From contig AF165818.4 of assembly GCA_000002975.1 (NCBI GenBank), positions 30,001 to 62,000 on the forward strand: a stretch of DNA of 32,000 nt, written 5' to 3'. The notes beneath the pieces were generated by a model, which worked only from the letters and a program-made list of their open reading frames with translations, did no database searches and was not told the DNA's origin. This stretch comes from Guillardia theta nucleomorph (lineage: Eukaryota > Protista > Cryptophyta). How positions within the stretch are numbered: position 1 is the stretch's first letter; every line of letters starts with the position of its first letter. Positions 26,266-30,101 of the stretch are shown here, piece after piece. The position numbers and the translations under genes were made by a program.

Positions 26266-26308
26266 TTTTTAATTTATCATTAGATGTATTATAATTTAAG
26301 TGTTCTCA

Positions 26309-26959
26309 ATGTGTAAAATTATAAATAATAAATGTAAATTGTACCTTCGACAATGGAAAGAAAAATACGAAGTATTAGACTTATATAGAGAAAATTCAGG
26401 TCATGTTAGTGTGCCCCAACGTTATCGATTTGATTTAGGATTAGGTTCTTGGGTAGGTAGACAAAGAATGAATTTTTCTTTGCAAAAAAACATTGAAATA
26501 AAATATGATTTTTTAAATTTGATTGGGTTTAAGTGGAAACTGACAAACAAAACTTTTTTTACTTTGAATTGGAAAAAAAAATATATAGAATTAAAATATT
26601 TTAAATTGAAATACGGGCATTGTACTGTACCATTTAACAATCAAAATTATAAAAAACTTTCATTCTGGGTCAAAAATCAAAGACAATTATTTAGGAATAA
26701 CAAATTAGGTAATTTAAAAAAATTTCTCCTTGACCAGCTTGGATTCTTGTGGAATGTCAAAAAACCTTCTAAAAGACTATCATGGATAATGCGTTTTAGA
26801 GAACTTACGGTGTATTTTCATGAAAATGGAAATTCTAATGTACCTCAGAGGAGGGGCCCTCTTGGAAAATGGGTACACAGGCAAAGAGAATTACACAAAA
26901 AAAATCATTTAAAAATTGAAAGAAAACATTTGCTTGATTCGATATTATTCAAATGGTAA
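26309..26959 (+). CDS. Stand-alone helicase-associated (HA) repeat protein, three repeats
   Basis: Three copies of W..(Y/F)..L..(Y/F)...G(H/N)..VP....L(G/S).WV..QR....L..(LG)F.W. The ATG is at 26309; the ORF track start at 26300 is a GTG. Confidence 0.85.
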   Translation: MCKIINNKCKLYLRQWKEKYEVLDLYRENSGHVSVPQRYRFDLGLGSWVGRQRMNFSLQKNIEIKYDFLNLIGFKWKLTNKTFFTLNWKKKYIELKYFKLKYGHCTVPFNNQNYKKLSFWVKNQRQLFRNNKLGNLKKFLLDQLGFLWNVKKPSKRLSWIMRFRELTVYFHENGNSNVPQRRGPLGKWVHRQRELHKKNHLKIERKHLLDSILFKW

Positions 26960-27065: not shown

Positions 27066-27272
27066 ATGGTTATGAATAGTAAAAATAAAAACGAAAAAAA
27101 AATTAAAAAGAATTTAGAACAATATAACTTAGAAAAAATAGATGATATCAAATTTATAAGGATAAAAAAAAATAATGGGACTGATTTTATAATTAAATGT
27201 CCCGAAACTTTTTTAAACTGTAAAAATAAAAACTTCGTAATTTTCGGGGAAGCTAAGTTAGATGTCAATTAA
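27066..27272 (+). CDS. Nascent polypeptide-associated complex alpha, NAC domain only
   Basis: IKFIRIKKNNGTDFIIKCPETF...NFVIFGEAKLD (cf. NAC-alpha VTIRKSKNILFVIxxPDVF...TYIVFGEAKIED). Confidence 0.8.
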   Translation: MVMNSKNKNEKKIKKNLEQYNLEKIDDIKFIRIKKNNGTDFIIKCPETFLNCKNKNFVIFGEAKLDVN

Positions 27273-27330
27273 ATTTCTCTATAATCTTTTTGGGTGCAAG
27301 TTGTTTGTAAATTATTAAATATAATATTGT

Positions 27331-27420
27331 ATTCTTACGTAGAGGTATTCTTTTCAAGCGATAACTGATGAAAAGAGCTTTTGCATTTTGAAAACTTTAA
27401 TTTAGATAATTTTTTAAAAT
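27331..27420 (+). ncRNA. U4: Candidate miniaturised U4 spliceosomal snRNA
   Basis: The 5' ATTCTTACGTAGAGG resembles the U4/U6 stem II strand. An 8-bp stem TCTTTTCA 27349-27356 / TGAAAAGA 27369-27376 encloses AGC-GA-TAACT-GA (kink-turn/K-loop). TTGCATTTTGAAAACTTT at 27381-27398 resembles human UUGCUAAUUGAAAACUUU. An Sm-like AATTTTTTA lies at 27408-27416. The 3' end is approximate. Confidence 0.7.
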
Positions 27421-28334
27421 CACTTGGAACTATTAATTTTTTTTCCAAAGTACGGTTTTAATATTTGGAAACTGCAAACTAATAGTTTATCCACATTCAT
27501 AACTGCTCCTGCGTTACTGAATTCACCACAGTAATTAGGCGCTGAAAAAATTGTGACTAACATTCTGTTTGAAAAAAATTTATATCCTTTATCAACCACT
27601 TGATGAGCTCTACAAATTAGATCAAAATCAAATTTTTCTATGAATTCTTTGACAATATTATCTCCGTATGTATATGAAATTCCTCTATCACTTAAATTCC
27701 ACCCTTGCTTATCTTCATTTGGATCAGACCAAAGTAGATCACAGAGTAAACCCTTTTCTGGTATTTCTACTGGTCTGGCTATATCTTCGATTTGTTTGAT
27801 AGAATTTAAAAATGGCGATAAGCCTCCGTGTATGCAAAAGATTTTTTTTTCTATAATTGCTGCTAATGGAAGATAATTAAATGTTTCATTTATGATTTTC
27901 CAAATTTTAATATTATATTTTTTTTTACATTCATCATAAAAACCATAAATTCTATTAATTTTAGAAGATTCATGATTTCCACGAAGTATAAATATTTTAG
28001 TTGGATATCTTACCTTAAATGCAAATAATAAAGAAATAACTTCAATTGACTGCTTTCCTCTATCTACATAATCTCCAAGAAAAAGATACTTCTCTGTAGG
28101 AGGATAACCATTAAATTCAAATAACCTTAGTAAATCATAGAACTGCCCATGAATGTCACCACAAATCTTTATAGGAGAATTGAGATAGAGCATAGAATTT
28201 TCATTATTAAAAACCTTTCTAGATAAGTAACACAATTTTCCAATTTCTTTTTCTGTAAGAAAAATATTTTTAATCTTTTTGGATTGTGTAAGTTTTTTTA
28301 TAACTTCTTCCAAGAATTTAGTGTTTTCGTTCAT
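27420..28334 (-). CDS. PP1: Ser/Thr protein phosphatase 1 catalytic subunit
   Basis: [44 protein letters not shown]. Confidence 0.97.
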
Positions 28335-29774: not shown

Positions 29775-30101
29775 TTATATTTTTATAATTTGAATATTAG
29801 AGGGTTTTAATGGTACAAAAATGTTTGTTTTTTCGAATTTGTTTCTAAAGATATTGTCCACAAAAATTTTTTGTTGTTCTGGTTTTATTTGAATAACTTT
29901 GCCGGTTTTCCCCTTAAAATCTCCTCTTTTAACTTTTATTTCATAATTTTTTTTTAAGATAAGTGTTTTTTTTTTATGATATTTTTGCATTTCTTTGGAT
30001 AAATTAGTTTTAATAATATTAGAATTTTTTCTTTTTAAGTTCAAAAAACATCTTTTCCTGTTCTTCCTTCTTGAACAGGTAACGTGGTGTTTGTATTTCA
30101 T
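29775..30101 (-). CDS. rpl26: 60S ribosomal protein L26 (uL24), divergent and C-terminally shortened
   Basis: MKY...VTCSRRKNRKR, LSKEM, KOW-like VKRGDFKGKTGKVIQI, PSNIQI. Confidence 0.88.
   Translation of the reverse strand: MKYKHHVTCSRRKNRKRCFLNLKRKNSNIIKTNLSKEMQKYHKKKTLILKKNYEIKVKRGDFKGKTGKVIQIKPEQQKIFVDNIFRNKFEKTNIFVPLKPSNIQIIKI

Follow-up and report, generated by a model that had tools for sequence, protein, structure and literature searches.

The question raised by this locus is what occupies a 147-bp gap between two protein-coding genes in the nucleomorph genome of Guillardia theta, and in particular whether the gap hosts the gene for the spliceosomal U4 snRNA. The window considered here, that is, the whole stretch of DNA that was analysed (32,000 nucleotides, positions 30,001 to 62,000 of the forward strand of contig AF165818.4), is very AT-rich (~25% G+C DNA) and densely filled with eukaryotic genes. 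In the G. theta nucleomorph, U6 alone was detected by Davila Lopez et al. (2008; PMC2396436); subsequently, Asman et al. (2019; Genome Biol Evol 11:1117, PMC6461891) described U1, U2 and U4 by combining small-RNA sequencing with Rfam-based covariance models (CM). The answer reached here is that positions 27331-27421 of the window, on the plus strand, constitute with a probability of roughly 93% the U4 snRNA gene of the nucleomorph, whose product is a discrete RNA of 91 nt. The assignment of U4 to the gap between NAC-alpha and PP1 is correct but not new: the sequence-only reading from which this analysis departs had suspected a previous report, and the same RNA is indeed listed as U4, under the name GtNM-R3, in the 2019 study. 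The features on which the argument rests are the following, in window coordinates.

27066 to 27272, plus strand: gene for a 68-aa NAC-domain protein, the upstream neighbour (Pfam PF01849, E 6.4e-10).
27331 to 27421, plus strand: proposed U4 snRNA gene (GtNM-R3), 91 nt (RF00015 alignment, small-RNA contig, supplementary table 5 of PMC6461891).
27331 to 27345, plus strand: U4/U6 stem II strand, AUUCUUACGUAGAGG (pairing with the cognate U6, duplex energy, uniqueness in the genome).
27348 to 27377, plus strand: 5' stem-loop with a putative reduced kink-turn, or K-loop (sequence, minimum free energy fold, CM alignment, PMC6461891).
27382 to 27395, plus strand: stem I strand UGCAUUUU (27382-89), overlapping the conserved UUGAAAAC (27388-95) (CM alignment to the consensus UUGCUAGUUGAAAAC).
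27408 to 27417, plus strand: candidate Sm-type site, AAUUUUUUAA, 4 nt from the 3' end of the RNA (sequence).
27420 to 28334, minus strand: gene for a PP1-type Ser/Thr phosphatase of 304 aa, convergent and downstream (PF00149, Metallophos, E 8e-45; PF16891, STPPase_N).

The flanking genes had been named NAC-alpha and PP1 from the letters alone, and the Pfam profiles confirm a NAC domain on one side and a PP1-type phosphatase on the other. The PP1 stop codon overlaps the 3' end of the U4 gene by 2 nt. In this respect the span originally proposed, 27331-27420, has to be amended at one extremity only: its start is retained, whereas the RNA ends at 27421, which gives the length of 91 nt and the 2-nt overlap with PP1. 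On the upstream side, a 219-aa ORF (26300-26959 of the window, plus strand) carries three helicase-associated repeats (HA, PF03457) without a helicase domain.

Within 27331-27421 the elements of a U4 follow one another in the order typical of this RNA, namely a strand complementary to U6, the K-loop hairpin, UGCAUUUUGAAAAC and AAUUUUUUAA. At gathering thresholds, a search of the whole window with Rfam returns no match, and U4 surfaces only when E-value thresholds are used. Under these settings, all 138 positions of the U4 model RF00015 are aligned to 27331-27458, with 22.4 bits and an E-value of 0.0031 in the window search. The first position of the model coincides with 27331, and restricting the alignment to the 5' part (27331-27408) lowers the score to 17.5 bits. 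When the search is extended to the 551,264-bp genome, composed of three contigs, the same site is the top match (22.4 bits, E 0.0013), 12.5 bits ahead of a runner-up that reaches just 9.9 bits (E 2.65). The model search, which the sequence-only reading had proposed as a check, therefore returns this site as the best of the genome, with a score that falls below the Rfam gathering cut-off for U4 (46 bits), and the better U4 elsewhere that would have spoken against that reading does not appear.

A score above the cut-off and the presence of central and 3' stem-loops are typical of U4 RNAs, not defining requirements. Divergent U4 RNAs of microsporidia were identified by dedicated searches and not by existing Rfam entries (PMC2396436), and the same applies to the U4 RNAs of chlorarachniophyte nucleomorphs (PMC6461891). 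A metagenome scan for relatives, based on the pattern CTTAYRYAGRGG N30-60 TTGAAAAC, yielded at least 120 chance matches, none of which is U4-like beyond the pattern itself, and Rfam detected no U4 in the five best of them.

The pairing with U6 is the element that most directly connects this RNA to the spliceosome. The cognate U6 gene is located on contig C3 (127809-127905, minus strand; 72 bits) and reads ...ACAGAGAAGAUUAGCAUGGCCCCUGCGUAAGGAUGACA... in the region of interest. The first 15 nt of the U4 gene, ATTCTTACGTAGAGG in DNA letters (27331-27345), face the U6 segment CCCCUGCGUAAGGAU with 14 of 15 positions paired, 12 through Watson-Crick pairs and 2 through G.U pairs, the remaining position being an A.C. 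In human U4/U6, a U.C mismatch is found at the position corresponding to this A.C. Moreover, the duplex contains a compensatory change: where the U6 consensus has GCGC the nucleomorph U6 has GCGU (C-to-U), and the facing consensus G of U4 is replaced by A (G-to-A).

Specifically, the stem II duplex has a predicted energy of -20.6 kcal/mol, to be compared with -5.5 +/- 2.1 kcal/mol for shuffled sequences, none of which (0 of 1000) reaches that value. Energy alone is not specific, because a second site of the window, at 26843, forms with U6 a duplex of -20.9 kcal/mol, equal to that of stem II, which is a mere GGGGCC/GGCCCC match within a coding region. Counting pairs along the 15-mer separates the sites, with 14 of 15 at the U4 site and 12 of 15 at the next best site of the window. 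In the 551-kb genome, a wobble-tolerant complement of the U6 stem II region with at most one mismatch occurs at two sites, the U4 site and the antisense of U6 itself, and the reversed control pattern gives no match in the same 551 kb. In addition, co-folding U4 with the nucleomorph U6, as had been suggested at the outset, recovers stem II together with the 5' stem-loop of U4. With regard to its surroundings, the U6 gene has a tRNA gene in divergent orientation (L005:1655-1732, plus strand) at a distance of ~60 bp, and one of the two Nop-domain genes of the genome at ~140 bp.

Downstream of the U6-complementary strand, positions 27348-27356 pair with 27369-27377 to form a 9-bp stem, made of eight Watson-Crick pairs and one U.G. 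The stem closes an AGC bulge (27357-59), followed by GA (27360-61), TAACT (27362-66) and a second GA (27367-68). Read as a kink-turn, this arrangement would provide tandem G.A/A.G pairs between 27360-61 and 27367-68, and a U.U between 27362 and 27366 enclosing an AAC loop. The hallmark of the U4 5' stem-loop, that is, a 3-nt bulge next to tandem sheared G.A pairs placed between the two U6-pairing strands, thus appears to be present in a reduced form: the non-canonical stem would consist only of the U.U closed by AAC, without any Watson-Crick pair, hence a K-loop. A kink-turn reduced in exactly this way had been claimed from the letters; it can be read in the sequence, is reproduced by the CM alignment and has been published likewise. 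The folding energy of the hairpin and of the whole RNA is not exceptional for AT-rich sequence (z -1.28).

By analogy with the established role of U4, the K-loop would be bound by the nucleomorph Snu13. A homologue of Snu13/15.5K is encoded in the nucleomorph genome by a 126-aa ORF of contig C2 (L013:1438-1818), with an E-value of 1.8e-34 to human 15.5K. The same genome contains only two Nop-domain genes (C2:40562-41248 and C3:128049-128741), presumably those of Nop56 and Nop58. Prp31, which would be a third Nop-domain protein, was not found in the nucleomorph genome, despite the presence of a U4 K-loop and of Snu13; the gene may have been lost or have diverged beyond detection, or the protein may be imported.

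The same motif raises the question of whether the RNA could instead be a box C/D snoRNA, with CUGAUGA serving as box C. Rfam does report snoR09 over 27360-27421 with 22.6 bits (E 0.16-0.5), along with weaker matches to other C/D families, but scores of the snoR09 type are far under the 50-bit gathering cut-off, and some resemblance is expected, given that the kink-turn of U4 and box C/D carry the same Snu13-binding GA/GA motif. In other words, the weak box C/D matches arise because of the K-loop motif of U4, with its AGC bulge and GA/GA. In common with box C'/D' K-loops, the nucleomorph motif has a short loop immediately next to the tandem G.A pairs, with no Watson-Crick non-canonical stem in between, the letters UGAUGA and a presumed capacity to bind Snu13/L7Ae; unlike them, it has U6-pairing strands on either side and an Sm site further downstream, and it lacks both a box D and a guide region. 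The single CUGA of the RNA lies within the hairpin, where it overlaps the C-like box, and the 15 nt at the 5' end pair with U6 and not with rRNA. Furthermore, the 2019 study lists 11 C/D snoRNAs and classes this RNA as U4 (PMC6461891). The snoR09 assignment was rejected on the lack of a box D near the 3' end and of a terminal stem, and a snoRNA identity can be regarded as extremely improbable.

The second strand expected to contact U6 is less well preserved in the proposed U4. In human U4 the stem I strand is UGCUAAUU. Positions 27381-27398 of the window read TTGCATTTTGAAAACTTT, so that the stem I strand is UGCAUUUU in place of the human sequence, as had been pointed out from the letters, and it differs likewise from the Rfam consensus UGCUAGUU, with three central mismatches against an unchanged U6. 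Two explanations had been offered for this divergence, either a weak stem I or a U6 that has co-varied. The second has to be abandoned, since the nucleomorph U6 keeps the canonical GAUUAGCA opposite stem I, while the first agrees with the energies: the best stem I duplex (-5.6 kcal/mol) is no better than shuffled sequences (mean -6.3). In the canonical register, stem I is limited to 3 bp (UGC/GCA), a 3x3 mismatch and 2 bp, and the three central mismatches of U4 against the unchanged U6 leave the AGC triad of U6 with an unpaired A. An alternative register that bulges two U6 bases is about equal (-5.4 kcal/mol).

Stem I is weak at best and eroded to 3 + 2 pairs; therefore, the U4/U6 duplex probably rests mainly on stem II. 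A more radical proposal, that stem I is effectively lost and the di-snRNP is held by stem II and proteins alone, is conceivable but on the whole rather doubtful, and the published figure presents two helices (PMC6461891). If true, the loss of stem I would refine what is already published and add no new element.

Toward the 3' end, the DNA reads AATTTTTTAA at 27408-27417, just ahead of the opposite-strand PP1 stop codon (27420-27422). As a sequence match, this U-run in the 3' part of the RNA qualifies as an Sm-type site, and a U-rich, Sm-like site close to that stop codon was among the elements originally noticed. By the same reasoning applied to Snu13, Sm proteins would bind AAUUUUUUAA in the nucleomorph U4.

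Evidence for the RNA itself comes from a small-RNA run of 2019. Between 27150 and 27650, its reads assemble into a single contig of the plus strand, 27336-27422, with a mean depth of 1409 and 0 differences from the window; the contig then runs on into poly(A) and the adapter AGATCGGAAG, which represent the library tail. An abundant and discrete plus-strand RNA is thus observed, as the sequence-only reading had anticipated, with its 3' end at 27421/27422, base 27422 being an A and as such indistinguishable from the poly(A) tail of the library. The contig starts at 27336, so that the 5' end at 27331 is not fixed by these reads. This run does not represent independent support, because it probably belongs to the data published in PMC6461891.

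In ordinary RNA-seq, both strands of 27150-27650, from NAC through U4 to PP1, are evenly covered at 10-20x, a pattern that is uninformative with respect to a small RNA and fits pervasive, overlapping read-through transcription. Three of its reads carry a non-templated A-run after 27394. Two further runs compared with the same interval contained no data for it.

The position of the 3' end bears on whether the gene is longer than proposed. According to this alternative, a canonical U4 of ~128 nt would extend to 27458, with a central hairpin at 27409-27432, an Sm site AAUUUUUUUU located inside the opposite-strand PP1 coding region and a short 3' hairpin, and the 91-nt species would be a processing product. 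The alignment of all the CM positions goes in this direction, and the extension adds ~5 bits (22.4 vs 17.5); a gain of this size from U-runs is, however, to be expected in DNA of ~25% G+C, and among the additional pairs several bear a non-standard mark in the CM alignment, the others being mostly A-U or G.U. The abundant small-RNA contig reaches no further than 27421/27422, where it passes into poly(A) and adapter, and the published RNA is 91 nt long (PMC6461891). The longer form was rejected on the end of the contig, and it can be considered quite unlikely.

Flat read-through coverage, together with a sub-threshold CM score, could also be taken to indicate a chance resemblance, in which a stable fragment of pervasive read-through, without a spliceosomal role, happens to look like U4. 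Against this stand the four U4 elements in correct order, a CM alignment that starts exactly at the first model position, a genome-wide unique complementarity to U6 that comprises a compensatory change, and a small-RNA contig that is deep, discrete and sharp at its 3' end. Taken together, these observations make a fortuitous origin highly improbable.

The reading that is retained, a U4 snRNA gene at 27331-27421, coincides with the published molecule. Asman et al. describe GtNM-R3 as a U4 snRNA of 91 nt with a 3' overlap of 2 nt, starting with AUUCUUACGUAGAGG and ending with AAAAUC, and endowed with a shortened K-turn whose stem II contains no Watson-Crick pairs (three non-Watson-Crick); the legend of their Fig. 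1 states that every snRNA has its 3'-proximal Sm site marked by a box (PMC6461891). Length, overlap, start, AAAAUC end and K-turn all match the window, which identifies GtNM-R3 with the RNA discussed here. The same authors mention the Snu13 of the nucleomorph and, for Chroomonas mesostigmatica, a U4 of similar type, give GtNM-R3 read counts for six libraries and report reads in libraries treated to remove 5'-monophosphate RNAs (PMC6461891). When machine-read, the supplement string differs from the window by a U for A at nt 17 and by one extra U, amounting to 92 letters instead of the stated 91; these differences are taken as text errors because the read contig matches the window exactly. As for the other snRNAs of that work, the first 17 nt of the published U1, GtNM-R1 (supplementary table 5 of PMC6461891), occur at one site of the genome, C1:68313-68329 on the plus strand, 6313 bases past the end of the window.

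The nucleomorph RNA shares with canonical U4 (RF00015; human ~145 nt) the stem II strand, a 5' stem-loop in which tandem sheared G.A pairs adjoin a bulge of 3 nt, the UUGAAAAC motif and an Sm site close to the 3' end. In contrast, it is ~50 nt shorter, ends 4 nt past the Sm site without the central and 3' stem-loops typical of U4, and its K-turn has a non-canonical stem limited to U.U and a 3-nt loop. The evidence supports a Guillardia nucleomorph U4 stripped to the stem II strand, the K-loop hairpin, the stem I/UUGAAAAC region and the Sm site, since the CM alignment, the pairing with the cognate U6 and the discrete plus-strand small RNA agree with one another. The proposal of a U4 reduced to its essentials is in this way upheld, with all the listed elements found where they had been placed.

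In analogy with the established role of U4, this RNA would act as the chaperone of U6, which would enter the tri-snRNP duplexed with U4 and stay so until Brr2 unwinds the two RNAs. From a methodological point of view, reading the raw sequence recovered a highly divergent snRNA missed by the Rfam gathering threshold and placed its ends no more than 1 nt from those published. The nucleomorph U4 illustrates how far this RNA can shrink, to 91 nt with a K-loop in place of a full kink-turn, without a 3' domain and with stem I eroded, a point already made in 2019, and it helps to explain the splicing of 17 introns in one of the smallest eukaryotic genomes.
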